Below, piece by piece: positions 7,375 to 33,312 of a stretch of 40,897 bases of DNA. The translations under genes and the position numbers were made by a program. This stretch comes from Octopus bimaculoides. Lineage: Eukaryota. The number at the start of each line of letters is the position of its first letter. The stretch's first letter is position 1. The notes under the pieces were generated by a model. The model did no database searches. It was given only the letters and a program-made list of their open reading frames with translations, and was not told the origin of the DNA. The stretch spans positions 75,432,898 through 75,473,794 of the forward strand of contig NC_068985.1 in the NCBI RefSeq assembly GCF_001194135.2, given 5' to 3'.

Positions 7375-7532
7375 CGGCATTTCGTTCGTCCTTAATTTCT
7401 GAGTTCAAATTCCGCCAAAGTTGACTTTGTCTTTCTTCTTTTTGGGGTCGATAAAATAAGTACCAACTGATGTAACTTACTTAAGCCCCTCCCCCTAAAT
7501 TACTGGTCTTGTGCCAAAATTTGAAACGAATA
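7375..7532 (+). mobile_element. tRNA-derived SINE family A, 3' part starting at CGGCATTTCG
   Basis: CTGAGTTCAAATTCCGCC..GACTTTG..GGGGTCGATAAAATAAGTACC..GTGCCAAAATTTGAAAC matches the other copies. Confidence 0.85.
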
Positions 7533-7544
7533 TGTAGATAAATA

Positions 7545-7763
7545 AAGGCGGTGATGTAGCAGAATCGTTAGCACGCCAAGTAAATTGCTTAGCGACATTT
7601 CGTCCTCTTTACGTTCTCAGTTCAAATTCCATCAAGATCGAGTTTATCTTTCATCCTTTCGGGGTCGATGAATTAAGTACCAGTTGTGCACTCGGATCGG
7701 TAGAATGGACTTGTCGCACCCCTCAAATTTCAGGCCTCGTGCCGAAATTTAGAACTGATATTA
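7545..7763 (+). mobile_element. SINE family A, full length
   Basis: AAGGCGGTGA..GCAGAATCGTTAGCACGCC head, GTTCAAATTCC B box, same tail. Confidence 0.9.
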
Positions 7764-7775
7764 TACAGAGAACTC

Positions 7776-8031
7776 AAGACGGTGACTAGCAGAATCGTTC
7801 GCACGCTAAGAAAAATTCTGAATGGTATTTCATCGTTCCTTATAGCGCTGGGAGCAAATTGGCATTTGGTCCGTCTTTACATTCTAAGTTCAAATTCCGT
7901 TGAGGTCAACTTTGCCTTCTTTCATCGTTAATGGAGTCGATGAAATAAGTACCAGTTGAACACTAAGGTCGATATAATAAACTTAAAATCTCCCCAGCGA
8001 AATTGCTGCTCTTTGCCAGAATTTGAAAGCA

Positions 8032-8104: not shown

Positions 8105-8700
8105 GAGGGTACTAGCAAGCAGTACCGGCATACTAACATAGCAGTCAAAATGACCAAACCACAAGTTATCACTTAAGCACCAAGATGAAAGCCGGCTAAT
8201 GAATAAAAACCCTCAGAACCCTGTAGCAATAACGGAAATAATAAAACATTGAAAATCAAACATACCCGTATCAATTGTGATTTCGGACTTTGAGAAATCC
8301 CTTAGTCCTCAAAACGTGTATTACTGGCACACAAGGTTGTAGAGTTTATTCATCTCAACCAATGTATGCGATGACAGTTTTTAATGTCGCAGCAAACTTA
8401 AAAAGGTGATCGAAATGAATAAAAATGATTTAAATATATATGAGGATATTATTTTCATGCGAAAAAAATTTTAACGGTATAAATGATCAATCAATAAATA
8501 AAGATATTAGCATGTAGTACCAGCATGCTGACATAGCAGTCAAAATGACCAACCCACAAGTTATCACTTAAACACAAAGAAATTTTATTAGTGGCCAGAA
8601 TATTACAATACCTTTTAAGGGGAAAATTATAAACAATTATTAATAAGGGCGAAAGAAAAAATTCCCGATGACAATATGCTCAAAAATAGAATTTATGTAG
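8105..8700 (-). repeat. Hammerhead-associated T-rich repeat family, copy 1 (70-bp direct repeats 395 bp apart)
   Basis: TAGCA..AGTACC.GCAT.CT.ACATAGCAGTCAAAATGACCAA.CCACAAGTTATCACTTAA at 8113 and 8508. Reverse complement of 8578-8700 matches 11273-11400 and 17150-17260. Confidence 0.8.
8262..8321 (-). ncRNA. Degenerate minimal type I hammerhead ribozyme
   Basis: Minus strand: ATACACG-TTTTGA-GGAC..GTCC-GAAA-TCA caat TGA-T-A-CGGGTAT. Stems I, II, III and GAAA are in place; the CUGANGA core is decayed. Confidence 0.6.
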
Positions 8701-8730
8701 TCTAACTGCATACAATATTTTTCACTACAC

Positions 8731-8773
8731 AAGGCGGTGAGCTGGGAGAATCGTTAGCACCCCGGGCGAAATG
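8731..8773 (+). mobile_element. SINE family A 5' part, interrupted by element A1; 3' part resumes at 10529-10607
   Basis: AAGGCGGTGAGCTGGGAGAATCGTTAGCACCCCGGGCGAAATG; after the insert, GGTATATCG..GAGTTCAAATTCCGCCGAGGTCGACTTTGCC. Confidence 0.9.
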
Positions 8774-10528
8774 AATTATTTGAATTATTGTGAAAACTGC
8801 TGTGTTGCTCTGTGAGAGCTGTGTGAATTACTGTAAGTTGTCTCTGTGAATAATTGTGAAGTTTTGTGGAATTATTGTTGTTACGTTTCACGCGAGCCGC
8901 TGTTTTGTTTCCCCAGCTGTGGCGAGTGGTAGGGTCTCCAGTATGGAGAGCTGCACCAGGACCACTGCGGTGAGGAGGCCAGTGCCGCTGGAAACCAAGT
9001 TGATCAAGCTGGATATGGAGAAGGTGAGAAGAAGCAGCAACTTGATAGAAGCAGATGGAGACTCATATAAATTATCCCCCCACAAAAAAAAAGAGACCAA
9101 GGAAGACAAAATTCTGAGGACAGTTGTGTATCGTACACAGGCTGTCGAAACCTGTAAAATTGAAATGGTGACGGAAGAGGAAATCGAGGAGTGCCTGGGT
9201 GAAATTGTGAATGAAGCGACGTACATCAGCAGAAGAAGAAGGTTCGGTAAGGTAGAGGTGAGGTTCGCCACCATAGAAGAGACAACCATTTTAAAACCAC
9301 AAAAAATAGCACTACTAGAGGAAGAAGAAGTGTGAGAATACATATTCCGAGAGTGCCACCAGAAATTAAACCGGAGTGGTTCGTTGCAACAGTGCTGGCT
9401 GCAACCAAGTAGGATCCGGAATTGGGACCAGTGGCGGAATCAANNNNNNNNNNNNNNNNNNNNNNNNNNNNNNNNNNNNNNNNNNNNNNNNNNNNNNNNN
9501 NNNNNNNNNNNNNNNNNNNNNNNNNNNNNNNNNNNNNNNNNNNNNNNNNNNNNNNNNNNNNNNCATAGAAAGAATTCCCTACCAGATAGAATTGGAGGAT
9601 AAGACAACGTTAAATGTCGTAGTCGAGAAAAGGAAACCAAATTGTTACATATGCGGGGATAGAGGTCATATGAAGACCAAATGTCTCCTATATGAGTTCA
9701 CATAGCTACAGCGAGAGAAAGCACAAGCAGAGTAGGAAAACATTGTAGACCATACAGAGGAAACAAAAGAGAGACAGAAGTGTGAAACAGAGAAAACAAA
9801 GGAGAAGAACGAAAATGAAGCTACTAACCCCCAAAAAGCGAAAGAAAAATAGGTTAAAGGAACGGTCGACAGAAAACAAAAAAAAAAAAGAGATAGAAAA
9901 GCCAGAAACTGATAATGCACAAGAAGAGGAGGAGAGAACGGATAAAGATGTCAAATACAAGAGAGTTTTGATGAAGTACGAGAAGAGTGAGCAGATGGAG
10001 AGAAAAGTCGCGAAGCTGGAGGAAATAATAAAAGTGAAGATACCGATACCGGAGAAATGTGCTGGGGAATGCATTTTGATGCACGAGGAAAACTACTGGG
10101 AGTATATAAAGGAACTTGGTGAAAATATAATAACGAAATGGGTATGGTTGGTGAAGACACCAACCCCTAGAACTGATTATTTGCAGTTGATAAGGAGGGA
10201 AGTAACATTGGTTAATGGGAGAAAAGTAACGCGAGTGTTTCATTTTTTTGAGTTGCAAAACCGTTAAAATGTCTACGTGATGTTGAACATGAAAGTGAAA
10301 AACTGGATAAATGTAACCACTCGACTTCGGGGGTCGAGTGGACATTGCGCCTCAGTTTTTTTATTTTTGCATATTATCATTTTATTTTAATTTTTCTTCT
10401 ACTATTATCATTCGCTTTTGTAATTTTTAGTTCCCCGATTTTTTGTTTGTTGCGTTTTTTACCGTCTTTATGTTTTGTGATGTCTTAAAAATTCTTCATA
10501 TAGCCCTTTTGGGGGTAATAAAGAAATA
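8774..10528 (+). mobile_element. Element A1: RT-less retroposon with gag-like ORF1 (CCHC knuckle), Tx1/L1-derived, HAL1-like
   Basis: TGTGAA-rich 5' UTR; broken ORF from ~8944 to stop 10267; knuckle CYICGDRGHMKTKC at 9643-9684; K/E-rich linker; T-rich 3' UTR; ends GCCCTTTTGGGGGTAATAAAGAAATA. No EN/RT motifs. Contains a 120-N gap. Confidence 0.85.
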
Positions 10529-11235
10529 GGTATATCGTGTACTGTTCCGTTCAGAGTTCAAATTCCGCCGAGGTCGACTTTGCCTTTTATCCTCTCGTGG
10601 TCGATAANNNNNNNNNNNNNNNNNNNNNNNNNNNNNNNNNNNNNNNNNNNNNNNNNNNNNNNNNNNNNNNNNNNNNNNNNNNNNNNNNNNNNNNNNNNNN
10701 NNNNNNNNNNNNNNNNNNNNNNNNNNNNNNNNNNNNNNNNNNNNNNNNNNNNNNNNNNNNNNNNNNNNNNNNNNNNNNNNNNNNNNNNNNNNNNNNNNNN
10801 NNNNNNNNNNNNNNNNNNNNNNNNNNNNNNNNNNNNNNNNNNNNNNNNNNNNNNNNNNNNNNNNNNNNNNNNNNNNNNNNNNNNNNNNNNNNNNNNNNNN
10901 NNNNNNNNNNNNNNNNNNNNNNNNNNNNNNNNNNNNNNNNNNNNNNNNNNNNNNNNNNNNNNNNNNNNNNNNNNNNNNNNNNNNNNNNNNNNNNNNNNNN
11001 NNNNNNNNNNNNNNNNNNNNNNNNNNNNNNNNNNNNNNNNNNNNNNNNNNNNNNNNNNNNNNNNNNNNNNNNNNNNNNNNNNNNNNNNNNNNNNNNNNNN
11101 NNNNNNNNNNNNNNNNNNNNNNNNNNNNNNNNNNNNNNNNNNNNNNNNNNNNNNNNNNNNNNNNNNNNNNNNNNNNNNNNNNNNNNNNNNNNNNNNNNNN
11201 NNNNNNNNNNNNNNNNNNNNNNNNNNNNNNNNNNN

Positions 11236-11905
11236 TTTTAAATTCCTTATACCCGAACCGGACTGATTTAAAGTCTATTTTTCCGCATATTGGCATAGAA
11301 TTTTTTTTCTTTTGCCCTTATCTATAATTATTTATAATTTTCACCTTAGATGGTATTTCAATATGCTGGCCACTGATAAAATTTTTCAAAAAACATGTCA
11401 GCCTCATATTAGAAGTAAATTTATTACTATTCATTACGGGACTAGCAATCACTTTACGTGAGTCTCCTGACTGTCTGCACGTGTGCTGAGGCTCGATACA
11501 GAATTTCTGTTTAGATATATTTGGAGTACATAAATTTACTCATGACTTTGCAACTGCTTTTTCCGTGGCTATATATGTGTATTCCTTTTATTCTTATCTT
11601 GTTTTTCGCTGAAGAAGGAAGAATCCTTGTGGATTAATCCAGAAATCGGCCCGATTCAGGAATAACGAATTTTAAAAATTTCTGTTAGCTTGCTTTCCTT
11701 GTTTCACCATGCTGTGTATTTATAGTGAAAAATATTGTACGTGGTTAGAGGATCTCATGTCTATTCTTCAGCATTTTGGCACAGAAAAAGTTTTTCCTTT
11801 GCCCTCATATATAATTGTTTATAATTTTCACTTTAAAAGTTATTTTAATATGCTGGCTACTGATAAAATTACTCTTGAAAAATGTTATCCTTATATTAGA
11901 TGTAT
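11236..11905 (+). repeat. Hammerhead-associated repeat family, copy 2 (partial tandem, period 486 bp)
   Basis: GTCTATT..GCAT.TTGGCA.AGAA..TTTGCCCT.AT.TATAATT.TTTATAATTTTCAC at 11273 and 11759. Confidence 0.85.
11602..11665 (+). ncRNA. Minimal type I hammerhead-ribozyme-like motif
   Basis: CTGAAGA (11609), GGA..AATCC ttgt GGATT..TCC stem II, GAAA (11642), near-palindromic stem III ATCGG-C-CCGAT. Stem I pairs poorly. Confidence 0.6.
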
Positions 11906-11984
11906 ATATTATATTATTTATTTCTTTAACTAAACGCGATGCATTAATTCCTATGTAAATTTATTTTCACCCATTTTTTGAGCG

Positions 11985-12310
11985 ACTCTCTACTCTGTAC
12001 TGATTTCTTCCTCTCGTCTTTGCTTCCTTCTTCCTCCATCCTTTTCTAATTCCCTTTCTCCACTTCCCTCCTTCACCGTTTTCTATTTGTCTTTCTCTCC
12101 CCTCTTTCCCTTTTTCTCTTTTTTCTCTCGTTACTCACACGTGACCATCGTCCATCCTTCTTTTCTTCACATGACCATCTTTCTTTTCTTGCTCGGACGT
12201 CTAAACGACTGGACATTTCTTCTCTCTCTCTCTCTTCTATCATTTCTCTTTTCAAAAAATGTCTCTCCCAGCGTTCACTATTCTCCTTTCGTTCCGGTCT
12301 AACAAAGCTC
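11985..12310. repeat. Polypyrimidine/polypurine low-complexity tract
   Basis: Almost entirely C/T on the + strand. Confidence 0.8.
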
Positions 12311-12544
12311 CTTATCTGTTTTCATTCGGTTACCTTGTATGTCCCCAATGTTTTTTTTTGTTCCCAACTTTGACCCACCCCCCATAAATCCTAAATTTTA
12401 TTTAAGAATTTATGGGAGCTACTCTCTTTGATGATGTATATTGTCGCTTGAATGCCCGAAATGAGGAGTAGATAGACAGCCGACAACCGATGAAGGGTCC
12501 TTCTATGTTAACTTGTCCTGTTTTACACTTTTTCGTTGTTTACG

Positions 12545-12609
12545 TATATATATACTTATATACATACAGGCATACACACACACATACACACACATACACA
12601 CACACACGC

Positions 12610-12647
<38 letters not shown>

Positions 12648-12690
12648 TTATATATATATTTATATATATATACATGTATACATACGTACA
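12545..12690. repeat. Compound (CA)n/(TA)n microsatellite
   Basis: Direct reading of the sequence. Confidence 0.95.
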
Positions 12691-12704
12691 TAAATGAACA
12701 TACA

Positions 12705-12880
12705 GATATGTGTGTGTTTGGATTTTTTTACCTCCTTATAACTTATCTGTTCAGGAAAAGATTACCAGGCTTTAAAGAAAAATCTAAATATTGGGGGCAA
12801 TTTATTCGACTAAATTTCTTCGAGATGGTGCCCCAGCATGGCCGTATTCTGATGACTGAAACAAGTAACAAAACATGATA
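12705..12880 (+). mobile_element. SINE family B, 3' part
   Basis: ..TTCGACTAAA..GGTGCCCCAGCATGGCCG..ATGACTGAAACAAGTAA tail shared with 23897-24254. Confidence 0.75.
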
Positions 12881-13440
12881 AAACATATACATACCTACAT
12901 TTATTACCATGAATAATTTCAATTTCTTAGCTCGGTTCATTCGTTGCGGCTGAGTTAATCCTGCCGCAATATATTTTCGATGAAATACATTCTTTCTTTT
13001 ATATTTTTTACGACGTGAAGTTTTTATGATTCTGTTGTTTTTGAAGGATTTTGTTTTTCTTTTACTCAAGTAATGTTTATTGCGTATTTAAATTTATTGT
13101 TGTCTTAGTTGTTGATATTTTATGTAGGATTATTTTTGGCAAGTATTTTAAAACAACACTTTAGTTTGTTTTAACATTCAAAATAAGACTGTTGCCAAAC
13201 TTATATGAAAGAATCTTTACCAATAATAAACAAATAGATATACGAGCCAACAAGAGAGATTGTATGTAGTTACTTGCCGTCTTGAAAATAGTGAGTCATG
13301 TTAAGAATTGGAAGGATGCTTAAGGTCTTAAGAATTGGAAATCTTAAATATCTCTCCAAAAGTAGGGAATGGTCACTTCTGGAATAGCTTTGGCCATAAG
13401 TGAGCTCAAGTAATGTTTTACAAAATCCATTCCTTTTTAT

Positions 13441-13780
13441 GCATGGCTAAGTGGCTAAGAATTTGCTTCGTAAATATGTTGTTTTAGATTCACTCCCACT
13501 GTGCGGCACCTGGATCCCATATTTTCTGCTATAACACCGGGCGGAAGAATGCTTTATGAGTGAAGTTGGTAGACGGAAATCATACGGATTCCCATCATAT
13601 ATCTGAATATGTGTGTGAGAGAGAGCATTGGTGCTTCTGTTCACTCTCCTTCGAATGAAAACTTAGCGGCTCGACAAAATGAAAGCGAATGAATAAGCAT
13701 CAGGCTCTATCTATTCCATTAAAACCTTCCAGGTCATGCAAAAGCATACTTCATTATCAATGACTGAACTAAATAATGAA
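13441..13780 (+). mobile_element. SINE family B, degenerate full length
   Basis: CCCACTGTGCGGCACC, GAGTGAAGTTGGTAGACGGAAA, ACTTAGCGGCTCGAC and ATGACTGAA motifs in order. Confidence 0.65.
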
Positions 13781-13921
13781 GTAAATGTATAAAAGATTAT
13801 ATTAATATTTAAATGGTTTTATGACTCCTCGAGGTCTTTCGTCTTATCTTACTTAATACATAAATTTATGTCGATATTTACAAAGTTACACAACAGTGAC
13901 TTCTTTATGTCACGGATTTAA

Positions 13922-14147
13922 TTATGTGTGTGTGAGTGGGTGTGTTTGTATTATATATGTGTGTCCATGTGTGTGTATATATGTGTGTGTGTATATGTGT
14001 GTGCATGTGCGTATGTCTGTGTATATATATATATATATGTGTGTGTGTGCGTATATATATGTATGTGTATATATGTGTGTATATATATGTGTGTATATAT
14101 ATGTGTGTATATATATATATATATGTGTGTGTATATATGTGCGTATA

Positions 14148-14200
<53 letters not shown>

Positions 14201-14217
14201 ATATATATATGTGTGTG

Positions 14218-14264
<47 letters not shown>

Positions 14265-14292
14265 ATNNNNNNNNNNATATATGTGAGTGTAT
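13922..14292. repeat. Long compound (TG)n/(TA)n microsatellite with a 10-N gap
   Basis: Direct reading; source of the spurious ORFs at 13896-14428. Confidence 0.97.
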
Positions 14293-14929
14293 ATACTATG
14301 ATGGATTTTTAATGCAATTAGTAAACACAAATTTAATCGTAAATACCCTTATCCTATTTACGTTTATGTATAGTGAAAACCTGAGCCTACCTCATAAACA
14401 TTATTGTCACCCATTTGATGCAAACTGAAACAAATGGGTATATTTTTTGTTTGTATATAACATGCGTTATATAATTATATATTGATAAATACAAAATGAG
14501 AGTCGAAGCAAGCAATGTAGATACATAATAGCAATTTAATCTTAGGATTATGAGATGGTAATGTGCATAGATACAGAAATATGCTCCAACGTCACTGTTC
14601 CCTCATACCTTCCAGATAATAGATATTTTAAATGAAATTTTCAACAAATACGCTTCAGATGGTGTAGTTCCCGTTATGCCCGAATTTGTTGTGAAAAAAC
14701 CTTTTTCTAGGGGGGAATGTAGAGAAGCGTTTCTGAAAATTCACATGAATCGGATTTGTGTCCTCATAACTTTCGGAATAATGGGTATTTCTAAAGGACA
14801 CTTTCGGTATATACTTTTCAGTGTGTGCAGATTACGATTATATCGGAATTTAGTATGAAGATAAAAATTTGTGGGATAGCATACAACAGCTCGCAAAAGA
14901 TGCCGTGATGGATGCTATAATCTTCGCCA

Positions 14930-15740
14930 CAAGAGGACGGTGGTGCACAGAACGTTGTACACGTCCTCTAACAAGATAGATGTTGTCCCAATAGAGGCAA
15001 TAGAGGAGTCCCTCGAGAACGTAACACCAGCAGAATTAATAATGGAAGGCGGTGCAGAGGCAGAAACATCATTAGAACAAGATGTGGAAGGCCCCAGTAT
15101 AATTGATTATTTCGGTACACGTAACGAGGAACCATATGGAATGACTCGCTCGGACAGGCCAGGTCCGGAGCCGAAGCAAACGGAGGCGAAAAGGAAAATA
15201 AACAAGTGGCACATGGTCACGTATGCCAAAAGTACGACTATAGAACGAAAGATTACAAAGTTTAAATCAATAATAAGAGTAAAGCTGCCTCCGGAGAAAT
15301 ATTCGGAAAAAAAAACACAAAGGAATAATTATCGACAAGGAGAGATGTGAGAAATTAAAAGAACTGTTTTGAAGTAGCATAGACCTGTTGGGGATATACA
15401 TTGAGTTCGATGCACTACCACCGGTCGTGAAGTTTGCAGATTTGAAACCACTAATGAACGTTTAAAAAAAGAGCAAAGTGAAATTTAAAAAAAAAAGAGG
15501 AAAAATAGACTTCAAAAAGTTTTTTAAAAAGAACGATACGAAAAAGGAAAAAAAAGAGAGTGTAAGAACGATTTATTAAATTGTATAATTTAAGTGTCAA
15601 ATGGTACTTCTTGAGAGTGGGGCTCAATGCAACCATTCCACCATCATTTTGTTGGTGTGAATGGTTGTGTTTTTGCTTTGCTGCGGTTTTTTTCTTTTGT
15701 TGTGCGAAGCCACCATTGTTTGGTGGTACTGAATAATGGT
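14930..15740 (+). mobile_element. Element C: internally deleted ORF1-family retroposon remnant
   Basis: VVHRTLYTSSNKIDVVPIEAIEESL resembles the N-terminus of A and B; IIRVKLPPEKYSE resembles B VKIPALPVEKYSE; T-rich 3' region with GCCACCA-TTGTT-TGGTGGT hairpin. Confidence 0.6.
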
Positions 15741-15779
15741 GAAAAATGAGAAGTTATGCCGAAGCCATGAGAATTTGAG

Positions 15780-16165
15780 TTATCGTTGACCCAAGTGTGC
15801 TCAAACAGGAGATGTTGCAGTGCAAGAAAGAGCTGATAATGAAATATAGTATGATGGTGAAGAGGGAAGGATCAAATATAAAACTGAACCTGACAGAGGA
15901 GGGACAGGTGAAAATGGAAAAGAAGTCGGTAATATTCAGAACATTTTCAAATAGAAACAATTGAAAACGCGCTGCAGGAAGAAATAGAAGAAATTTGAAA
16001 AGACATATGGGAGACAGCATAGTGTTCTTTACGAGAGGAAAGAGATACAATGGTGACCTTTGTATCAGTGGAGGAGGCGGAAAAATCCTCCAGGAGGAGA
16101 AATGGACATTGCTAGCAACTTGTTTGGATAAACGAATTGTTAGAATTAGAGTAGGAAGAATCCTA
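15780..16165 (+). mobile_element. Element C2: ORF1-family N-terminal fragment
   Basis: KKSVIFRTFS..DSIVFFTRG..TMVTFVSVEEAEK..LLATCLDKRIVRIRVGRILP aligns by eye with A2 TYISRGRKFGTVEVRFATIEEA..LLPSYRGRRSVRIRIPRVTP. Confidence 0.6.
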
Positions 16166-16484
16166 CCCTTGATTATTATTTGTGGGACGCAGTTGAGCAA
16201 GAGACCAACAACATTCCTTGTAATTCTAAAGATGAACTGGAGGCAAGGATTATTGCAGCATTCACCAACTTAAACAAGGAGACGGTCGAGAAGAGTTGCA
16301 GGAGATTCCGAAGTCGTCTGTAGGCTGTGGTTGAAGCCAATGGCGATTTTATGGAATATATTTACTCTGTAGTATTTCAAGATATTTGTATCTAATTTTG
16401 ATAAATATATCTCTTAAAATGAGATGTCAGTGTTATTTTCATTTTCGCGTAATTTAGACGCCAATTTACTCACCGCGACCTGTA
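16166..16484 (+). mobile_element. Tc1/mariner (DDD-type) transposase C-terminus and right end
   Basis: (P)LDYYLWDAVEQETNNIPCNSKDELEARIIAAFTNLNKETVEKSCRRFRSRL*AVVEANGDFME; element ends ..CACCGCGACCTG-TA. Confidence 0.85.
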
Positions 16485-16575
16485 TATATAAGATATTGTA
16501 ATGAAGAATGGAGAATAACACATTTAGTAGGGTTTTTCATATTCCGACACCTGTTTCTGCTGGATAAGTTGATAT

Positions 16576-16792
16576 AAGGCGGCGAGCTGACAGAGTCGTT
16601 AGCACGCCCGGCAAAATGCTTCGTGGTATTTTGTCTGTCTTTACGTTCTGAGTTCAAATGCCGGGGTCGACTTTGCCTTTCATCCTTTCGGGGTCGATAA
16701 ATTAAGTACCAATTATGCACTATGTTCGATGTAATCGACTAGTCTCCCACCCCTACAACTTCAGGCCTTGTGCCTATAGTGGAAAGGATTTA
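16576..16792 (+). mobile_element. SINE family A, uninterrupted (empty target site)
   Basis: Continuous AAAATGCTTCGTGGTATTTTGTC across the position occupied in the other copies. Confidence 0.9.
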
Positions 16793-16939
16793 TTTAGTTG
16801 ATATGTGTGTGTGTGTATATANNNNNNNNNNNNNNNNNNNNNNNNNNNNNNNNNNNNNNNNNNNNNNNNNNNNNNNNNNNNNNNNNNNNNNNNNNNNNNN
16901 NNNNNNNNNNNNNNNNNNNNNNNNNNNNNNNNNNNNNNN

Positions 16940-17287
16940 ATTATAAACATGGGAAAAGAAAAAAATTTCATTTGTTTCTTATCGTATTCTCTACTGAAGA
17001 GGGAAAAATCCATTGGATTAATCCCAAAATTGATTCAAAATAGAGATAACGAATTTTTTTAAAAAATTTGTTAACTTGCCTTCATCGATTTCAGCACGAC
17101 GTGTATTCATAGTGAATGTATATTGTGATGTGGTGATTGACGATTGAAAGTCTATTCTCAGCATATTGCCATAGATTTTTTTTTTCTTTTGCCCTTATTT
17201 ATAATTTTTACCTTTAAAAGTATTTTGATATGTTGGCCACTTTGATGGAATTTTTTATTTGGAAAAAATTGTATCCCATTTTAGAAG
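16940..17287 (+). repeat. Hammerhead-associated repeat family, copy 3
   Basis: Collinear with 11590-11900 (GGATTAATCC..ATAACGAATTTT..GTGTATT.ATAGTGAA..GTCTATT..GCATATTG). Confidence 0.85.
16988..17046 (+). ncRNA. Degenerate minimal type I hammerhead ribozyme
   Basis: TCTCTA (stem I), CTGAAGA, GGGA..AATCC att GGATT..TCCC (stem II), AAAA (GAAA mutated), TTGA-T-TCAA palindromic stem III, TAGAGA (stem I). Confidence 0.6.
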
Positions 17288-17290
17288 TAT

Positions 17291-17848
17291 GGGATCTTTC
17301 TGATTTGGCAGGCACCACTTGTTTTCTTAACGAAACACTTTCAAACTTGGGACACTGGTAGAATGTGTTATATAAAACATCTTTTGCTCTTAGTGTTATT
17401 GAGAAAATTTTATCTTTTTAAAGTTATTTCGTGTTAAGATTGTCGTATTACGGTAATTTCAACCAATCACTGACGTCTGTTGAGGTGAAAACAATTACTG
17501 CTGTGGAATGTAAACAACACGTTCTAGCGGTGTAATGGGATCTTTTTCCTTGAATAAAATTAGTGCCGTTGTTTGTCAACAACTATCGGCGGTACTGCTA
17601 TTTATGTCATCGTTCGTGCGTTTGTACTGGTTTTAGCTTAGGGTTTTAAAACGTTTTGCTCACAATCCATAGCAGTAATTATTTTCACCTCAATAGACGT
17701 CAGTGATTGGTTGAAATTACCGAAATACGACAACTTTTAACAGGAATTAACTTCGAATATAAATTTTTTTCTGTGTTCTATAAGACAAAATATACAAGTA
17801 TACGAAGTTTTAAAGTGTTTCGGTAGAAAACACACTAAATAAAACATA
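17291..17848. mobile_element. Foldback MITE (non-autonomous DNA transposon); right end lost in N gap
   Basis: Long inverted arms 17332-17506 and 17667-17821 (..GGTAATTTCAACCAATCACTGACGTCT.. / ..AGACGTCAGTGATTGGTTGAAATTACC..); starts GGGATCTTT. Confidence 0.85.
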
Positions 17849-18397
17849 NNNNNNNNNNNNNNNNNNNNNNNNNNNNNNNNNNNNNNNNNNNNNNNNNNNN
17901 NNNNNNNNNNNNNNNNNNNNNNNNNNNNNNNNNNNNNNNNNNNNNNNNNNNNNNNNNNNNNNNNNNNNNNNNNNNNNNNNNNNNNNNNNNNNNNNNNNNN
18001 NNNNNNNNNNNNNNNNNNNNNNNNNNNNNNNNNNNNNNNNNNNNNNNNNNNNNNNNNNNNNNNNNNNNNNNNNNNNNNNNNNNNNNNNNNNNNNNNNNNN
18101 NNNNNNNNNNNNNNNNNNNNNNNNNNNNNNNNNNNNNNNNNNNNNNNNNNNNNNNNNNNNNNNNNNNNNNNNNNNNNNNNNNNNNNNNNNNNNNNNNNNN
18201 NNNNNNNNNNNNNNNNNNNNNNNNNNNNNNNNNNNNNNNNNNNNNNNNNNNNNNNNNNNNNNNNNNNNNNNNNNNNNNNNNNNNNNNNNNNNNNNNNNNN
18301 NNNNNNNNNNNNNNNNNNNNNNNNNNNNNNNNNNNATATATATATATATTCTTCATTTAAGCATATTCCAACTACCGACTTACAGGCTACTGTAAAC

Positions 18398-18560
18398 GTG
18401 TGCGGCCAACTGGTCGGGAGTGTTCGGCTCATAGTCATAAGGCTGCGGGTTCAATTCCAGGATCCGACAGTGTATTGTGTTTTTGAGCGAAACATTTCAT
18501 TTCGCGTTCATTCAGTTTGACTAACTGTAATGAGTACAAATTGAATGCTGTGCACCCCCT
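18398..18560 (+). mobile_element. tRNA-derived SINE with CORE-like segment
   Basis: TGGTCGGGAGTG..GGGTTCAATTCC B box followed by TTGTGTTTTTGAGCGAAACATTTCATTTC. Confidence 0.6.
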
Positions 18561-18869
18561 TTCCAACCCAGCTGTCACATCCTCAATGCTCTGCTGTAGA
18601 AAGCGTATGGAAACCAAAATAGTATTGTCTTTATCTACTTCAAACACTTAGGTACCTAAAACAGCTACAGAAAGATGATATATGTTACCAGATCATACAC
18701 ACTAGTGGGAGGCAGCTGGTTATTCTTTGTACAGACTACAGCTATATCCTGCTGCTGTTGCTATTGCTAAAAATACAATTTCAAACAATGATTATTTGAT
18801 GTATATCGTTCTCAAAGATCAAAAGAGACTATTTACAAATTGCAAATTTGTTCAACAACAATATTGTTA

Positions 18870-20368
18870 ATCCTAAAGTACACGAGAGAAAACTATTCAA
18901 AACCACAGGAAAAGTAGAGTTTGCACCGATAGAAGCCATAGAAGAATGTATCAAAGAATTAAAAAGACTCACAACTTACATTACGAGAGAGAGAAAAAAA
19001 GCCACTGTAGAGGTGCGCTTCACAACAGAGGAGGAAGCAATAAAGAACTCCACAGAGGCTATAATGTCAGAGGAATGAATGCTCCTGCCTTCGTACTGCG
19101 GCAAATGTGTGGCCAAAGCGCGAGTGGGTAAGATGCCACCCGAATTAAAGGAAGAATGGCTGATGACAGCAATAACATATAATATGAAGGATGGGGAGAT
19201 TTGGAAGGCTACCAGACCGAGAAGGTAAACTACTAGGGATATGGTATTGAATTGATAATACAGGCAACTACAGAGGATTTGAACAGTGTGGTGGATGAGA
19301 TTGTGATGCCAGAGGATGTAAGATTCAGAATCAGTGTAGAGAGAAGGCCGCCAATATGTTTCACATGTGGAGAGAGGGGCCACATGAAGGCGTGGTGCGC
19401 CCAAAGTGTAGAACAAGCAGAAGAGTTGGAGAGACAGGAGAGTGTAGACCAGATCATGGTAACAGAAAAAGTAACAGAAAAAGAAAAAGAGAATGGATTT
19501 ACTATGGTTAAAAAGAAAAGAAAGTGGAGCGGAGTAATGAGTTCTCCACCAGAGAAGCAAAAAAAAAGAAGAAAGAAATTGTGAAGGAGGACAGTAGGAA
19601 GGAAAAAGAAAGTAAAAAGAAAGTGGAGTTAGCAGTAAAGATACCGGCTCTTCCAGTGGAGAAATATTCGGAAATACAACTGCAGGAAGAAGAGTCGGAG
19701 AGATTATTTAGGATAGAGGAAGGAAAAACAGAACAACAAAGTACAAGATAAAAGAAAGAAGATACGAGTAAGAGATGGAGTGTGATATTATGTGACATAC
19801 CCAAAGAATGTAGAAACAGAAAAAAAAAAATTATTAAGTTTAATTATTAAGAGTGAAGGTGCCTTCATACGTCTACGCAGAGAATATGAAGGCAATACTG
19901 ATTGAAGAAGAGAACTACAGAAAGTTGAAAGAGATGTGTGGAGATAGCGTTGACCCACCAGGAGTGGAAGTGGAATTCAATGAGTGAATCTGAGAGATAT
20001 TGAAGTTCACTGATGAAGTTCTACTAAAAGAGTGGCTGAAGAAAAGATGTCTGTCGGAGTGTACGTTCAAAAAGAGATGGAAGCATATTGCACGAGTGCT
20101 GTGCGTGCAAGGAGCCGTGTGAATAGACGGGAAAAAAGAAAAAGAACAAAAAAAGGTACCAGCAATAAATCGGGTCTTGTGGGTTTGGAGCGTGGCTTGA
20201 TCTTCGTTTCATTTGTATGATCTCTGTATTGTTAATATCATTCATTTTTTAATATTTTATTTAATTTTTGAAGTCACATTTTATGTAAAACCATATCGCA
20301 TTACTGATCTCAATCAATTGTTTTTTTTTACATTTATGTGTTTAGCCCCGGTGGGCAATAAAGAAATT
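18870..20368 (+). mobile_element. Element B: divergent, 5'-truncated RT-less ORF1-family retroposon
   Basis: KVEFAPIEAIEECIKE..TYITRERKKATVEVRFTTEEEA..LLPSYCG; knuckle CFTCGERGHMKAWC at 19357-19398; ends GCCCCGGTGGGCAATAAAGAAAT, directly followed by the SINE A body. Confidence 0.8.
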
Positions 20369-20543
20369 GGTATTTCGTCTGCCGGTACGTTCTAAGTTCA
20401 GCTTCTGCTGAGGTCGACTTTGCCTTTCGGGATCGATTAAATAATTACCAGTTGCGCACTAGAGTCGATGAAATCGCCTTAATCTCTTTGTCTGTCCTTG
20501 TTTGTCTCCTCTGTGCTTAGCCCTTGTGCGCAATAAAGAAATA
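20369..20543 (+). mobile_element. SINE family A 3' part carrying the LINE-type tail
   Basis: GGTATTTCGTCTG..GAGGTCGACTTTGCC..; ends TTTGTCTGTCCTTGTTTGTC..TTAGCCCTTGTGCGCAATAAAGAAATA. Confidence 0.85.
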
Positions 20544-20559
20544 TATATTAAGATAGTCA

Positions 20560-20613
20560 AAGGCAGCGAGCTGGCAGAAACGTTAGGACGCCGGTCGAAC
20601 TGCTTGGCGATAT
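20560..20613 (+). mobile_element. SINE family A 5' part, interrupted by A2; 3' part resumes at 22307-22412
   Basis: AAGGCAGCGAGCTGGCAGAAACGTTAGGACGCCGGTCGAACTGCTTGGCGATAT. Confidence 0.9.
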
Positions 20614-22306
20614 AACGTCTCTGTGAATTATTGTGAATACTGATGTGTTACGCTGTGAAAACTGTGGGAATTACTGTAAGTTGTTTCTGGGAATAATTGT
20701 GATTTTTTGTGGAATTATTGTTGTTACGTTTCACGCGAGCCCATGCAATTTTTCCCCAGCTGTGGCGAGTGGTAGTGTCTCCAGTATGGAGAGCTACGCC
20801 AGGGCCACTGCGGCTAAAAAGCCAGTGCCGCTGGAACGAATTTTATCAAGGTGGATATGGAGGAGGTGAGCAGAAGCAGGAATTTGATAGAAGTAGAGGG
20901 AGACTCATACAATTTGCGCCCCCAAAAGAGACCAAGAAACTCAAAATTCTGAGGACAGTTGTGTATCGTACACAGGCTGTCGAAACCTGTAAAATTGAAA
21001 TGGTGACGGAAGAGGAAATCGAGGAGTGCCTGGGTGAAATTGTGAATGAAGCCACTTACATCAGCAGAGGAAGAAAGTTCGGTACGGTAGAGGTGAGGTT
21101 CGCCACTATAGAAGAGGCAACCAAGCATGCGACCAACATTTTAAAAACACCAAAAATAGCATTACTACCAAGTTATAGAGGAAGAAGAAGTGTGAGAATA
21201 CGTATTCCCAGAGTTACACCAGAAATTAAACCGGAGTGGTTGGTTGCAACAGTACTGGCTGCAACCAAGGAGGATCCGGAATTGGGACCAGTGGCGGAAA
21301 CAAAAGTGCGCAACTGGTGGGGATTTAGACTCGAAATGTGACTTTTTGCCACATTCGAGGACATAGAAAGAATTCCCTACCAGATAGAAGTAGAGGACGA
21401 GAGAACGTTAAATGTCGTAGTCGAGAGAAGAAAACCAAATTGTTACATATGCGGGGAAAGAGGTCATATGAAGACCGAATGCCACCTATATGAGTTCACA
21501 CAGCCAAAGAAAGAGAAAGCAGAAGCAGAGGAGGAAAACATTGTAGACCACACTGAGGAAATGAAAGAGAGACAGAAGTGTGAAACAGAGAAAACAAAGG
21601 AGAAGAACGAAAATGGATCTACTAACCCTAAAAAGTGAAAGAAAAATAAGTCAAAGTAATGGTCAACAGAAAACAAATAAGAGATAGAAAATCCAGAAAT
21701 TAATAATGTACAAGAAGAGCGGAAAGAACGGATAAAGATGTCAAATACAAGAGGGTTTTGATAAAGTAAGAGAATTGCGAGCAGATGGAGAGAAAAGTCG
21801 CGAAGTTGGAGGAAATAATAAGAGTGAATATGCCAGAGAAATGTGCTGAGAAATGCATTTTGATACACGTGGAAAACTACTGGGAGTACATAAAAGAACT
21901 TGGTGATAATATAATAACGAAATGGGTATGGTTGGTGGAGACACCACCCTATAGAACTGATTATCTGCAGTTGATAAGGACGGAAGTAACATTGGTTAAT
22001 GGGAGAAAAGTAACGTGAGTGTTTCAAGTTTTTCAGTTGCAAAACCGTTAAAATGTTTACATGATGTTGAACATGAAAGTGAAAAACTGGATAAATGTAA
22101 CCACCCGACTTCGGGGGTCGAGTCGACATTGCGCTTCATTTTTTCATTCTTGTATATTATCATTTTATTTTAATGTTTCTACTATTATCGTTCGCTTTTG
22201 TAATTTTTAGTTCCCCTATTTTATGTTTGTTGCGTTTTGTACCGTCTTTATGTTTTGGTATGTCTTTAAAATTCTTTGTATAGCCCTTTTGGGGTAATAA
22301 AGAAAT
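20614..22306 (+). mobile_element. Element A2: second full-length copy of the RT-less ORF1 retroposon, with 6-bp TSD CGATAT
   Basis: Collinear with A1 end to end; knuckle CYICGERGHMKTEC at 21441-21482; CGATAT at 20608-20613 and 22307-22312. Confidence 0.9.
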
Positions 22307-23896
22307 CGATATTTCGTCTGTCTTTACGTTCTGAGTTCAAATTTCACCGAGGTCGACTTTGCTTTTCATCCTCTCGTGATCGATAAATTAAGTACCAGTT
22401 GTGTACTAGGGTNNNNNNNNNNNNNNNNNNNNNNNNNNNNNNNNNNNNNNNNNNNNNNNNNNNNNNNNNNNNNNNNNNNNNNNNNNNNNNNNNNNNNNNN
22501 NNNNNNNNNNNNNNNNNNNNNNNNNNNNNNNNNNNNNNNNNNNNNNNNNNNNNNNNNNNNNNNNNNNNNNNNNNNNNNNNNNNNNNNNNNNNNNNNNNNN
22601 NNNNNNNNNNNNNNNNNNNNNNNNNNNNNNNNNNNNNNNNNNNNNNNNNNNNNNNNNNNNNNNNNNNNNNNNNNNNNNNNNNNNNNNNNNNNNNNNNNNN
22701 NNNNNNNNNNNNNNNNNNNNNNNNNNNNNNNNNNNNNNNNNNNNNNNNNNNNNNNNNNNNNNNNNNNNNNNNNNNNNNNNNNNNNNNNNNNNNNNNNNNN
22801 NNNNNNNNNNNNNNNNNNNNNNNNNNNNNNNNNNNNNNNNNNNNNNNNNNNNNNNNNNNNNNNNNNNNNNNNNNNNNNNNNNNNNNNNNNNNNNNNNNNN
22901 NNNNNNNNNNNNNNNNNNNNNNNNNNNNNNNNNNNNNNNNNNNNNNNNNNNNNNNNNNNNNNNNNNNNNNNNNNNNNNNNNNNNNNNNNNNNNNNNNNNN
23001 NNNNNNNNNNNNNNNNNNNNNNNNNNNNNNNNNNNNNNNNNNNNNNNNNNNNNNNNNNNNNNNNNNNNNNNNNNNNNNNNNNNNNNNNNNNNNNNNNNNN
23101 NNNNNNNNNNNNNNNNNNNNNNNNNNNNNNNNNNNNNNNNNNNNNNNNNNNNNNNNNNNNNNNNNNNNNNNNNNNNNNNNNNNNNNNNNNNNNNNNNNNN
23201 NNNNNNNNNNNNNNNNNNNNNNNNNNNNNNNNNNNNNNNNNNNNNNNNNNNNNNNNNNNNNNNNNNNNNNNNNNNNNNNNNNNNNNNNNNNNNNNNNNNN
23301 NNNNNNNATGTATAATTATCTATATGCCGCGGGAATTACAGGTCTCAGTTCAATATATTCTTTCAGTTAAATTATCTTGAGAACTGAAAATGTTATAATT
23401 ATAATTCTACACATTTCATAAGCTGGATGAGCGCGGAAGATATTTTCTCCAAGAGCATAAACTCTTCTGCTCGGTTTCGATTTCTTCTTGAAAGCTATTT
23501 TTATTCTCTTATATAGCATCTATGAAAGCTAGCAAAAATAACCCATATGAGACAGATGAAAAATGCAAATTGCTGTTCTGTTTTCGACTTCAGAAGTTTA
23601 ATCGCATAGGAAGAACAGCAGTGCCTATTATACCTTTTTAGGGCCTCCGAGAATGGTGGGAAGGAGGAAGTACAGTATGTCAAAACTAAGGACCTGGCAG
23701 CAATGCTTCCAGGAGAGGTGGACTCCACTAAAGGCACTGAAGAACCGGGTGATGGTATTACCGAATAACGAACAAAGATTCCCACCAAGTACGCCAGTTG
23801 GGATTTGAACTCAGGGTCAAAAGATCCGGAGCAAATATCGTTGAACATCGTCTTTGATTGCCTATAAACATTTGATTAAACTTCTGTGGCTATATA

Positions 23897-26249: not shown

Positions 26250-26467
26250 TATTGGGTTCAAATTTTGATACAAGGCCAACAATTTGGAGGGAGTGGGATA
26301 GTCGATTATATTGAACTCCGTATTCAACTGGTATATATTTTATTAACTCAGAAAGGATGAAAGGCAAAGTCGACGTCAGGAGAATTTGAACACAGAACGT
26401 GAAGACACACGAAAATCTGCTAAGCATTTCGCCCGGCTTACTAACGATCTTACCAGGTCGCCACCTT
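26250..26467 (-). mobile_element. SINE family A, uninterrupted
   Basis: Reverse complement of the family consensus, including GAAAGGATGAAAGGCAAAGTCGAC. Confidence 0.85.
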
Positions 26468-30073: not shown

Positions 30074-31030
30074 ATGTGCAAAAGAAGCCTTGGAACTGCC
30101 TGACTTTCAGGCCTTATTGTGGGTCATTCTGAAAATGGACATAGCGTAAAATCACAGAAAATTTTGGTATCTCGCTTTCTACAGTTAATAGAGTGATTGC
30201 ACAATTCACCAAAGAGGGAAAGGAGTCCATACCACCTCGCCAAGATCAACCTAGCCCTCTGACAGAACCCTTTTCTTTGCTAAGAGAGGTATGGTGGATA
30301 ATCTTCGTTGCAAGACTTCTGACATAGCAGAACAAGTTGATGTCAGTCCCAGAACAGTTGTCAGGTATCTCCACAAACTTGGTTATTATGGCAGAGCAGC
30401 AAGAAGAAAGCCACTTCGACTTGCCAACATCAAGCGGAGAAAATATTGGGTTAGTGAGATGGTGGAGAGGCCACTAGCATTTTGGGATACTGTCATATTC
30501 TCCAATGAGTCCAGATTTGCTGTATTTCCTGACAGTTGTCGCGTGTGGATCTAGAGACTGCGATCAATAATTTGATGTGAAAAGATTACAGCTAACAATG
30601 GAACACGGCAGCTATTCTGTGATTGTCTGGGGAGCAGTTTGGAGCAATGGTTGATTAGAGGTGGTGCAATGTGAGTAAAACATAAACTCAGATAAATATG
30701 TGTCCATATTGCAGAAAGGACTCATTTCAATCTTCTCCAGTACTAAAATGATTCGAGAAGACTCTTTATTTATGGAAGATGGGTCTCTTTGTCACACAGT
30801 TAAAATTACCCAAGATTTGTTGGATGAGAATGGCGTTAAAAAGCTTCTATGACCAAGCCAATCACCAGATATGAACCCTATTGAAAACTTCTTGGACATA
30901 ATGGACAGGACACTTCATAAAAAGAACAAGAAAGCATCTTCAAAACCAGATTTTTTGAGATTACTGCATTAAACTTGGAAAGAATAGGGTACTTACATTG
31001 AAAAATGTAAAGGGCATGTCTACTAAATAT
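30074..31030 (+). mobile_element. Tc1-family (DD34E-type) transposase pseudogene
   Basis: VSPRTVVRYLHKLGYYGRAARRKP, WDTVIFSNESRF, FMEDGSLCHT, PSQSPDMNPIEN, terminal KGMSTKY; frameshifts and stops. Confidence 0.9.
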
Positions 31031-31044
31031 ATTCCACCAACGCA

Positions 31045-32478
31045 ACAGGGGAAATCAAAACAAGAACCATTGTTTTAAAACGTTTTGCCCAGAGGAAATG
31101 AAGATGGTACATATGGACCAGAATAAAACTGAAAAATGTCTTCCACTAATCTGAAATGACATTATTTATGTTACAAGATGGAGGAAATTTCGCACAGTAG
31201 AAGCCAGAATTAGGACGATGGAGAAGACACGCGAGCACTCTGTCAGGCCGTTAAAAACAAAGGAAGTGGTGCTTCTGCCGACCTATATTGGGCGGTGCAC
31301 GTCCCGTGTCAAGGTAACAGAAGTACCGCCGGAGAGTGATGCCGTGTGAGTGATGGCCGCCCTGTTATTTAACAGAGAAGACAAAATTAACATTTTATGA
31401 GTGACACGCTTTTCCCCCCAAAATTGGCTCGGGCAGAGCATCGCGTCCATCATTCAAGCGGCACCGGAGACCTGGAAAGGATTAACGACAGAGTGATCGT
31501 GGGTGAGAATGTGGTCCTGAAAATTCAAGTGGAGGGGAAACAAGATACGAAAATTTGCGTTAAGGTTGAGGCACCTCCGGTTTTACCTGGATGGGGAGCA
31601 GGTGTGGTCACCGCACGTTAGGCTCTACCTTCCACAGCTGACGTCCTTAATGGATATTGGTCCATGGATCAAACGAAGACCTAAGCTGAGTGATTGGCAA
31701 TTGAAGTGCTGTCAGGCGCTCCAGCTACTCTCTCGGGCGGACAATACCGGTAAGAGGATTACCACTGCGGATTCTATAACGGGTTAGTGGAATTTATGTC
31801 AGATGATGTCCTGAGTGAGGCCCTTGTCTTCGATGGAAATCAGTTGATCAACCTGTTCAGGAGAACTTTCGGGCAGGGGTATCTGGATAATTACTAGAAA
31901 TCCCTAGCTAGGCAGTGCTACCGTTCGGCTTTGCCTGTTCGAGACAAGCTGTCAAGGCATGGAAGTGCCGTCTCGCCAACATGCCCGAGGTGCCGACGGG
32001 ACAGAGAAACTGTCTTGCATGCCTTCGTAGAGTGTCCGGAATTATTAAGACTGATAAATTTTGTCGAGCAACTGTTGTCAGCGATAGGAAGAGTACAGCT
32101 ATCGGCTGAGTCTATCATCAAGATTGTGCTGCTTCCCTCCCTTAACAGAGAAAGGAATGCTTGTTTTTTTCTGCATAATAGCCATACTGACAGATACAGT
32201 ATGGAAGACGCGTGTAAGAGATATAGTGACCAGTACCTTCGTCTCCGGCCAGGGATTGGTTAACGTCTTTAGTTACCACCTCGATAGTAAGATCAGGCTG
32301 GAGAAGAGATACCTGGCGAAAAGATGGAGCAAGTAGTGAACATGCTGCGAGCGACTAGAGCCAGGTAACTGTGGTCAGAAGGAAAAGTAAAGGTTCGAAA
32401 CTGGCGGTTGGATGCCTTTCCTTCAGTTATGCACATTGCAAAATGTGCAATGATTATCAGGTTTAATTTGAAATTTAA

Positions 32479-32510
<32 letters not shown>

Positions 32511-32647
32511 TAACTGCATGACATCTGTTTATCGTCATCCGAAACTTTTTCATTCGTAGTGAACAACTTCTTCACCCTCTATGTTTGTCTGTCCTCGTTT
32601 GTCCCATCTATGTAAGGCTTCTATAGCCAATTTCATGAAATAAAGAA
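31045..32647 (+). mobile_element. Element D: internally deleted Tx1/L1-type LINE (ORF1 remnant joined to the ORF2 C-terminus with zf-RVT)
   Basis: YVTRWRKFRTVEAR..LLPTYIGRCTSRVKV (ORF1 family); LPVRDKLSRHGSAVSPTCPRCRRDRETVLHAFVEC (zf-RVT); 3' UTR ends TTTGTCTGTCCTCGTTTGTCCC..GGCTTCTATAGCC..AATAAAGAA. Confidence 0.8.
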
Positions 32648-33312
32648 GCTTCCTTCCCAACAACATGGTCCCGGGTTCAGTCCCACTGCTTGGTACCTTG
32701 GGCAGGTATTTTAGCTTTGTGAGTGTATTTGGAAAACGGAAACTGAAAGAAGCCTGTCGTACATATATATATGTGTGTGTATATGAGATCTTTTCCTTTT
32801 GGCCGGCACATAGAAAAAATAATTTTTTGTAACTAAACACTTTCAGAACGTCTTGTTGACAAACCACAGCAGTAGTTGTTTTCACCTCAATAGACGTCAT
32901 TGATTGGTTGAAATTACCGAAATACGACAACTTTAACACGAAATAACTTCGAAATTATAGAATTTTCTTAAAAACGCCAAGAGTAAATGATGTTTTAAAT
33001 GACACATTCTACCAGTATACGAAATTTGAAAGTGTTTAGTTACAAAACATTATTTTTTCTATGTGCCGGCCAAAAGGAAAAGATCCTGTGTGTGTGTGTG
33101 TGTGTGTGTGTGTGCTTGTTTCTGAATTTGTTACCCCTCCGTCGTTTGAAAACTCATGTTGGTGTGTTTACGTCCCTGTAACAGTGGTTCGGCATAAGAC
33201 CCCGATAGAATAAGTACCAAGCACACAAAGAGTAAATCTTGGGGTCAATTTCTTCGACTAAAAGGTGGTGCTCCGGTATGGTCGCAGCAAAATGACTGAA
33301 AGAAGAAAAGAA
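32648..33312 (+). mobile_element. SINE family B, head truncated by element D and interrupted by a MITE
   Basis: GCTTCCTTCCCAACAACATGGTCCCGGGTTCAGTCCCACTG..GGAAACTGAAAGAAGCC [MITE] ..GGTGGTGCTCC..ATGACTGAAAG. Confidence 0.85.
32786..33086. mobile_element. MITE, ~300 bp, ~60-bp TIRs, deletion derivative of the 17291 family
   Basis: GATCTTTTCCTTTTGGCCGGCACATAGAAAAAATAAT.. / ..ATTATTTTTTCTATGTGCCGGCCAAAAGGAAAAGATC; internal segment matches 17667-17821. Confidence 0.9.

Follow-up and report, generated by a model that had tools for sequence, protein, structure and literature searches.

Why should several octopus retroposons stop at one and the same nucleotide of another repeat? The question is raised by a window of 40,897 nt (the whole stretch analysed here; Octopus bimaculoides, contig NC_068985.1, positions 75,432,898 to 75,473,794), in which three retroposons, A1 and A2 of one family and B of a second, are each followed by the body of a short interspersed element (SINE), here called SINE A. 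An earlier note on this DNA had described all three as ending in AATAAAGAAAT and running into the SINE, and this is what we find: the tails are exact (A1, 10517-10527; B, 20357-20367; A2, 22296-22306), and the bases directly 3′ of them, aGGTATATCG in A1, tGGTATTTCG in B and CGATATTTCG in A2, follow the SINE consensus from position 47/48 onward. All three junctions are compatible with a single break at the 3′ edge of a hairpin loop, between G46 and C47; C47 is retained in A2, is a T in B, which could reflect CpG decay, and is an A in A1. The parts of the three loci are these:

8733-8773, + strand: SINE head hosting A1 (consensus 1-41), ending in ...GCGAAATG; 39/41 identical to the consensus (95%)
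8774-10527, + strand: A1, full-length ORF1-only retroposon with a gap at 9444-9563; tail of stem-loop and AATAAAGAAAT
10528-10607, + strand: SINE body hosting A1, from 47/48, cut by a gap at 10608; CTTAG(C) missing
18869-20367, + strand: B, 5′-truncated ORF1-only retroposon of the second family; truncation shown by the full-length copy B3 in locus L123
20368-20542, + strand: SINE body after B, from 47/48 to its own type-1 3′ end; non-SINE DNA beyond
20562-20620, + strand: SINE head hosting A2, 83% identical to the consensus; upstream CGATAT at 20608-20613, duplication possibly to 20620
20614-22306, + strand: A2, full-length ORF1-only retroposon, starting at 20621 if the duplication is 13 nt; tail at 22296-22306
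22307-22412, + strand: SINE body hosting A2, from C47 by comparison with the consensus, cut by a gap at 22413

SINE A is about 230 bp long and is represented in the window by some ten copies, which have in common a conserved body and a head in which box A-like and box B-like motifs were recognised by eye. Positions 31-60 form a 13-bp hairpin, CGGGCGAAATGCT-TAGC-GGTATTTCGTCTG, with a 4-nt apical loop (-16.3 kcal/mol, z -4.4; none of 200 shuffles is as good), and this hairpin is preserved in most copies. ARAGORN at default settings and Rfam detect no tRNA in SINE A; with relaxed thresholds ARAGORN draws a cloverleaf with the insertion site in the anticodon loop, and on the strength of that drawing the apical loop is predicted to correspond to a tRNA anticodon loop, a tRNA derivation of the SINE being plausible. 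Position 47/48 was also considered as the boundary between a tRNA-derived head and a LINE-derived module (LINE, long interspersed element), and was ruled out: the hairpin spans 47/48 and box B lies downstream. Five copies are uninterrupted at the insertion site and show it empty, as the note had also claimed, and a sixth copy begins at that site:

7587-7602, + strand: empty target site, in uninterrupted SINE 7547-7760
16618-16633, + strand: empty target site, in uninterrupted SINE 16578-16790
26410-26425, - strand: empty target site, in an uninterrupted SINE
34333-34348, - strand: empty target site, in an uninterrupted SINE
36246-36261, - strand: empty target site, in an uninterrupted SINE
7375-7530, + strand: SINE copy starting at position 47 (tCGGCATTTCG), with no recognisable element upstream

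The 5′ sides of the insertions are more varied than the 3′ sides. Matching SINE A heads abut both A1 and A2, as described before, and their 5′ junctions differ from each other. At A2 the reported duplication of CGATAT is exact (20608-20613 and 22307-22312); it stretches to 13 nt with two mismatches, CGATAT(AA/TT)CGTCT, an extension with an estimated chance of about 0.013, and in this longer form almost matches the 3′ arm of the hairpin with an offset of one base. The A in both copies of CGATAT had been read as a non-consensus base marking a true target-site duplication, and here the earlier interpretation is weakened: the A is a subfamily variant at position 49, present also in S7547 (the SINE at 7547; CGACAT) and in the SINE at locus L121 (TGACAT), and so not private to A2. 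At A1, by contrast, nothing is duplicated; CTTAG(C) is lost, and the 5′ end of A1 meets the head with a two-base overlap.

Family A elements are 1.7 kb long, A1 and A2 being 87-89% identical. B is related to A through its protein (40-45% identical), and their nucleotide similarity is confined to the last 40 nt, at the tail; despite this, the junction of B is identical to that of A. Further loci (L121-L127) were reached through exact protein matches, and seven junctions were sampled in all. One of these loci is on another O. bimaculoides chromosome (CM046624.1, locus L122), where a third copy, A3 (86% identical to A2 in one comparison, and 83-84% identical to each of A1 and A2 in the element tree, where A1 and A2 are 89% identical), meets a SINE at L122:10841/10842, ending in ...GTAGCCTTTTTGGAGTAACAAAGAAAT and continuing directly into CGGTATTTCGTCC, a junction identical to those of A1, A2 and B. 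The sequence 5′ of A3 falls in a gap. Its host SINE has a type-2 tail (see below) and CCTTTCGG, and lacks the CTCTCGTG found in the A1 and A2 hosts; its subtype thus differs from that of the B host, which has a type-1 tail. The host bodies are 86-91% identical to the consensus, versus 80-83% to one another, and A1, A2, B and A3 are all in the same orientation as their hosts. Retroposons therefore recurrently occupy one nucleotide position of this SINE, in independent loci and in differing host subtypes.

We have considered whether coincidence, or misassembly of gapped short-read sequence in repeats, could account for this. The window has six assembly gaps (9444-9563, 10608-11235, 14267-14276, 16822-16939, 17849-18335 and 22413-23307), both of the A host SINEs run into gaps, and L122 and L123 are heavily gapped. 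On the other hand the sequence runs unbroken through all four identical junctions, one of which comes from a different, chromosome-scale record, and SINE A and A have no common long word able to cause a false join. A1 and A2 align collinearly on either side of the internal gap of A1 (8781-9443 with 20624-21303, and 9564-10607 with 21362-22386); that gap is written as 120 nt where A2 has 58 nt, and a single reading frame results only with about 58 nt, not 120. The gaps at 14267-14276 and 16822-16939 are in or beside microsatellites and have no bearing on the junctions, and that at 17849-18335 ends 533 nt upstream of the first recognisable base of B. With nine sites in about 33 kb, an insertion placed at random has an estimated p of about 4e-4 of falling, correctly oriented, no more than one base from the site; allowing the first event to fall freely at any SINE position, the chance of coincidence is estimated at about 1e-8 if three events are counted and about 2.5e-5 if two are. 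Chance and artefact are thus very improbable indeed, and are in practice excluded.

Clues to the machinery involved come from the 3′ ends of the elements. A and B lack a poly(A) end and finish instead with a stem-loop of 4-5 bp and then AATAAAGAAAT; an AATAAA signal lies 5 nt from the element end. SINE A itself has 3′ ends of two kinds: type 2 (...CCTTGTGCCAAAATTTGAAAC...) is carried by the uninterrupted copies, while type 1 (...TGCTTAGCCCTTGTGCGCAATAAAGAAAT, at 20483-20542) has the same stem-loop and AATAAAGAAAT as the ends of A1, A2 and B. The pattern TAGCCC-N4-5-G(G/C)G-N-AATAAAGAAAT is found in all three retroposons and in the SINE at 20483-20542 (a looser form of it is TAGCC-N3-8-AATAAAGAAA[AT]). 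Because the type-1 end is also the tail of A and B, a correspondence on which the earlier note had not drawn, the type-1 subtype and the retroposons have very probably been moved by one reverse transcriptase.

A and B are non-autonomous, ORF1-only derivatives of a LINE, ORF1 being the first open reading frame of such an element. A leader made of short repeats stands at the 5′ end of each, a single ORF1, now broken, comes next, and some 280 nt of 3′ untranslated region close the element. ORF1 contains two RRM-like domains, one CCHC knuckle, a lysine-rich stretch and a C-terminal domain. The zf-CCHC match is above the Pfam cut-off; Pfam did not recognise the RRM part, nor the short reverse-transcriptase pieces of L125. 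A structure model (predicted local distance difference test, pLDDT, 91) has a tandem RRM-like fold that matches tandem-RRM proteins with probabilities of 0.9-1.0 and weak E values of about 0.01-0.05, and a PDB sequence search gave only a retroviral zinc knuckle (E 0.4). An ORF1 combining an RRM fold with a CCHC knuckle is reportedly the ‘type I’ of Khazina and Weichenrieder, and the ORF1 type seen here usually accompanies endonucleases of the apurinic type. The longest reading frame of A2 matches uncharacterised and CCHC-domain proteins of O. bimaculoides at 67-92% identity; a full library search gave 311 relatives, every named one of which is from an Octopus species. Additional relatives in the window are C1, C2 and D, including the following:

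14900-15738, + strand: C1, remnant of an ORF1-type retroposon, not in a SINE; tail of stem-loop and TACTGAATAATGG
31050-32510, + strand: D, internally deleted LINE; ORF1 30-32% identical to that of A, ORF2 C-terminus with zf-RVT, 3′ end of another type

The ORF1 of A and B thus has both the RRM and the CCHC parts, and its homologue in D stands upstream of a LINE ORF2 remnant. Because D joins a related ORF1 to an ORF2 remnant with zf-RVT, the ORF1 type can be linked to LINEs of the L1/Tx1 group, at most to that level; Tx1 itself is a candidate assignment.

How did the SINE come to be divided by the retroposons? We favour repeated insertion at the DNA level at G46/C47 of SINE A, giving it about an even chance, because of the SINE heads, the A2 duplication, the variety of hosts and the presence of all three A copies in the site. 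Families of non-LTR (non-long terminal repeat) elements are regarded as target-specific when >20% of their copies are flanked by the same repeat (PMC4494074); here three of three A copies and one of two in the B family lie at G46/C47, in a very small sample. The alternative that a single ancestral insertion in each family created a head-A-body unit, subsequently copied whole by retrotransposition, segmental duplication or gene conversion, we consider improbable; co-mobilisation of a composite was one of the outcomes that the earlier note had named as overturning its proposal. The alternative draws on the sharing of CTCTCGTG (two substitutions) by the A1 and A2 host bodies, a feature that neither the A3 host nor any of the eight remaining window copies has and that runs parallel to the element tree, agreeing with the closer relationship of A1 and A2; the identity among host parts (80-83%) is also close to that among the elements. 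These parallels have to be set against the form of the loci. Similarity between the A1 and A2 loci begins exactly at SINE +1 and the surrounding flanks are unrelated, with comparison of the window to itself showing no segmental duplication, so that inclusion of A1 and A2 in a larger duplication is ruled out. Within A there are 17 stretches of at least four T that should stop RNA polymerase III, and a transcript made by RNA polymerase II would bring upstream flank with it. A1 and A2 differ at their 5′ junctions by a complex change, the two heads have no derived base in common (their eight differences are two and six private ones), and the host parts differ at 22 of 125 positions where about 14 are expected from the divergence of the elements (p about 0.03, an estimate). 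For B, which sits at the same nucleotide, a separate event is required whatever the history of A.

A second alternative dispenses with DNA targeting altogether: the composites would be built as cDNA, when reverse transcription of SINE RNA halts, or the RNA is cut, at the anticodon-like loop and the enzyme switches to an A or B RNA precisely at the 3′ terminus of the latter, with a possible return to SINE RNA near the loop that would give a head-A-body arrangement with a small overlap or loss. Synthesis that simply finished at the loop would yield a SINE copy starting there, and two such copies, that at 7375 in the window (position 47) and one at L122:11016 (about 43), have no A- or B-like element upstream; these keep the alternative alive. 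The second of them directly follows the tail of the A3 host, such that L122 presents a chain of A3, a SINE from 47 to its tail, and a second SINE from about 43. Several other features would also be accommodated. B has a SINE body downstream and no head upstream (none was found in 18336-18900, upstream of the truncated end); in L123 the tail of a further copy, B2, is fused to the complete 5′ end of B3 rather than to a SINE, as expected of an end-to-end jump; the single junction base varies (A, T or C); a related family, F, on a contig from a separate sequencing run (L121), joins the SINE at about 40, a few bases upstream; and elements with this tail also exist outside SINEs. Family E in L125 (also a separate run) has the same kind of tail and is not at the loop. 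The B2-B3 fusion (L123:9370-10400) is spacerless, reading ...AATAAAGAAAA directly into CGTTGAGCGGCAG..., and fits either an end-to-end template jump or an insertion exactly at the start of an element. Against template switching, two switches leaving and re-entering the SINE within about 15 nt are needed in both of the readable cases, and the complete tail of A predicts mostly solo insertions, where three of three copies are in the SINE. The A3 host has a tail type different from that of A; the hairpin stem should stall the enzyme at its base rather than let it copy the 3′ arm and stop in the loop; and G48 is copied correctly, leaving a block at the equivalent of tRNA position 37 unsupported. 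Chimeras of the U6-L1 type, moreover, are generally known to have variable truncation points and not fixed ones. We therefore regard template switching as the less likely course, though a serious possibility.

Insertion into SINE DNA does not readily explain the tails outside the site, the missing head of B, the SINEs starting in the loop or the L122 chain, and further observations weigh against it. The target-site changes are inconsistent, with a duplication of 6-13 nt at A2 and a loss of 5-6 nt at A1. The type-1 SINE ending at 20542 carries the A/B tail and yet lies outside the site, as does B2, and site specificity is therefore not absolute; of the earlier proposal of a site-specific retroelement on the SINE, the recurrence at one position (A1, A2, B and A3) stands and strict specificity does not. 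The sharing of CTCTCGTG noted above also counts here, as does the sample of three A and two B copies. The tails and outer duplications of the A1 and A2 host SINEs are unreadable because the gaps at 10608-11235 and 22413-23307 cut the hosts 79 and 106 nt past the junctions. Finally, recovery of an autonomous partner, which the earlier note had called for, did not succeed: no autonomous LINE with the A/B tail, and no endonuclease or reverse transcriptase of such a partner, was found in the window or in L121-L127, where L127 ends before its tail and the D-type LINE tail is a different one.

If the retroposons are nonetheless inserted into SINE DNA, we infer an endonuclease, a partner LINE and a guiding step. 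The partner, probably of the L1/Tx1 group and acting in trans, would recognise the A/B tail, and its endonuclease would nick the bottom strand of the SINE DNA at G46/C47. If reverse transcription starts with the very last base of the retroposon RNA, the invariant 3′ junction would follow, and a less precise break of the second strand could give both the 5-6-nt loss at A1 and the 6-13-nt duplication at A2. Because AATAAA is only 5 nt from the element end, transcripts may read some 10-30 nt into the flanking SINE, and this SINE stretch could guide them to other SINE copies. An occupied SINE should cease to act as a source gene, because the insert parts box A from box B. The fuller proposal is that an ORF1-only lineage and its LINE partner home to the anticodon-loop position of a tRNA-like SINE having the same tail, silencing source copies and perhaps guided by transcripts, as a parasite within one LINE-SINE system; we advance it tentatively, with its chances somewhat short of even.

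Comparison with known systems reveals both likenesses and differences. Target-specific LINEs are documented for tRNA genes, small nuclear RNA genes, microsatellites, DNA transposons and LTR elements (PMC4494074, PMC4640811), and those of the Tx1 clade that target mobile elements include Tx1L in Tx1D (Xenopus), Tx1-Mar and SINEU in Mariner-N4_AMi (crocodilians), and LTR-targeting Tx1 families (PMC4494074). As in these, the octopus case has a non-LTR retroelement at one position of another interspersed repeat, non-autonomous passengers on the same target, tandem and nested arrangements, and a specificity that is strong in some families and weak in related ones. It differs in that the target is a SINE, one subtype of which has the invader’s own 3′ tail, that the elements are ORF1-only and known without an endonuclease or reverse transcriptase, and that the target-site changes are inconsistent. 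The LINEs of tRNA genes, NeSL-1_TV (tRNA-Pro), LIN15_SM (tRNA-Arg) and LIN25_SM (tRNA-Glu) (PMC4640811), similarly use a defined position in a multicopy tRNA-type sequence; however, they carry a restriction-like endonuclease and hit real tRNA genes, whereas in the octopus a SINE with a degenerate tRNA-like sequence is hit. Mammals have ORF1-only derivatives of L1, the HAL1 (‘half-L1’) elements. They resemble A and B in being non-autonomous, in retaining ORF1 and the 3′ end and in being mobilised in trans, but they are not site-specific, and they have an L1-type ORF1 (coiled coil, RRM and C-terminal domain) and a poly(A) tail. SINE-LINE pairs of the stringent type with a common 3′ tail are exemplified by UnaL2/UnaSINE of the eel (cited in PMC4494074; the details are general knowledge). 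There, as here, a stem-loop and a short conserved end are common to a SINE subtype and LINE-derived elements, with no poly(A); the difference is that no autonomous LINE with the tail was found in the octopus loci, and a common tail alone leaves the fixed position unexplained. Chimeric retrocopies formed by template switching are known as U6-L1 and related bipartite and tripartite chimeras (works listed in PMC4494074; the details are general knowledge). In these, too, a 5′-truncated partner lies downstream of one whose 3′ end is complete to the base, but the octopus truncation point is fixed and there is a matching head upstream in both of the readable cases. A search of the literature, without Repbase or Dfam, found no description of a SINE as a LINE target.

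If targeting is correct, a SINE joins the known targets of site-specific non-LTR elements, which also include rRNA genes and telomeres, as an unusual target with an ORF1-only passenger. It would imply competition within one LINE-SINE system, with occupied SINEs silenced as source genes, and the junction would serve as a clean marker for dating and phylogeny. If template switching is correct, the SINE loop is a defined switch point of a reverse transcriptase and a natural example of how composite retroelements originate. On either reading, repeat annotators should expect SINE A split at 46/47.

Searches beyond the octopus loci added little. A scan of metagenome contigs with the tail pattern gave only chance matches, with no similarity to the SINE or to A; the SINE core is absent from the bacterial and archaeal genome collection and from viral contigs; and papers and supplements searched for the SINE or junction sequence held nothing usable. 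One O. vulgaris brain transcript, comp3761_c0_seq1 (PMC9115989, supplementary file 3), begins with GGTAGTAAAGAAATAGGTATTT, which is tail-like, followed by AGGTATTT, and diverges from SINE A afterwards. An O. vulgaris locus (L124, OX597840.1:31862384-31883409) was rejected as an informative one: it holds an ORF1-like gene annotated ‘EPM2A-interacting 1-like’ in three repeats with a period of about 5.3 kb, and no SINE A in 21 kb. This tandem array may be a tandemly amplified or domesticated ORF1. In the window, a tail-like string at 32630-32650 was rejected as a further junction, being probably part of the head of a second SINE family.

SINEs constitute 11.6% of O. vulgaris DNA (PMC13282606), and SINE A copies in the octopus loci often lie head to tail (7375-7990; 20369-20620; L122:10842-11190) with spacers of 16-20 bp or none, which suggests that SINE A itself prefers to insert beside or into existing copies. 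The copy at 7780-7990 has an internal duplication of roughly consensus positions 25-68, the second unit of which lacks the loop bases GCTTAGC, a loss nearly equal to that at the A1 junction. The A1 host SINE sits between inverted copies of a further repeat (8575-8727 versus 11269-11384 and 11723-11877, both on the - strand), which is also tandemly duplicated downstream (11273-11435 versus 11759-11922) and has a similar stretch near 17150-17270. The 3′ end of D (...TTATCAGGTTTAATTTGAAATTTAAA(TA)n; 32263-32510) has ATTTGAAA in common with the type-2 SINE tail (for example 7500-7530), an observation that also covers L125:1650-1800, and D-type LINEs may thus be the partner of the type-2 SINE.

Other repeats in the window include a LINE remnant at 37255-38700, with a reverse-transcriptase piece (FTDDLKL), a long C-terminal region and a weak zf-RVT match (E 0.03), and fragments of Tc1/mariner-type transposases recognised by eye in translations at 16190-16330 and 30255-31000, the second of which adjoins the 5′ end of D. 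There is an inverted-repeat element resembling a foldback or miniature inverted-repeat transposable element at 17320-17767 (17421-17526 versus 17647-17753, 88%), with a second copy, oppositely oriented, at 32841-33049. The stretches 18395-18545 and 32640-32790 belong to two more SINE families, one with a GGTTCAATTCC box B and one with a CORE-SINE-like core (CTTGGGCAGGT...); neither takes part in the junctions.

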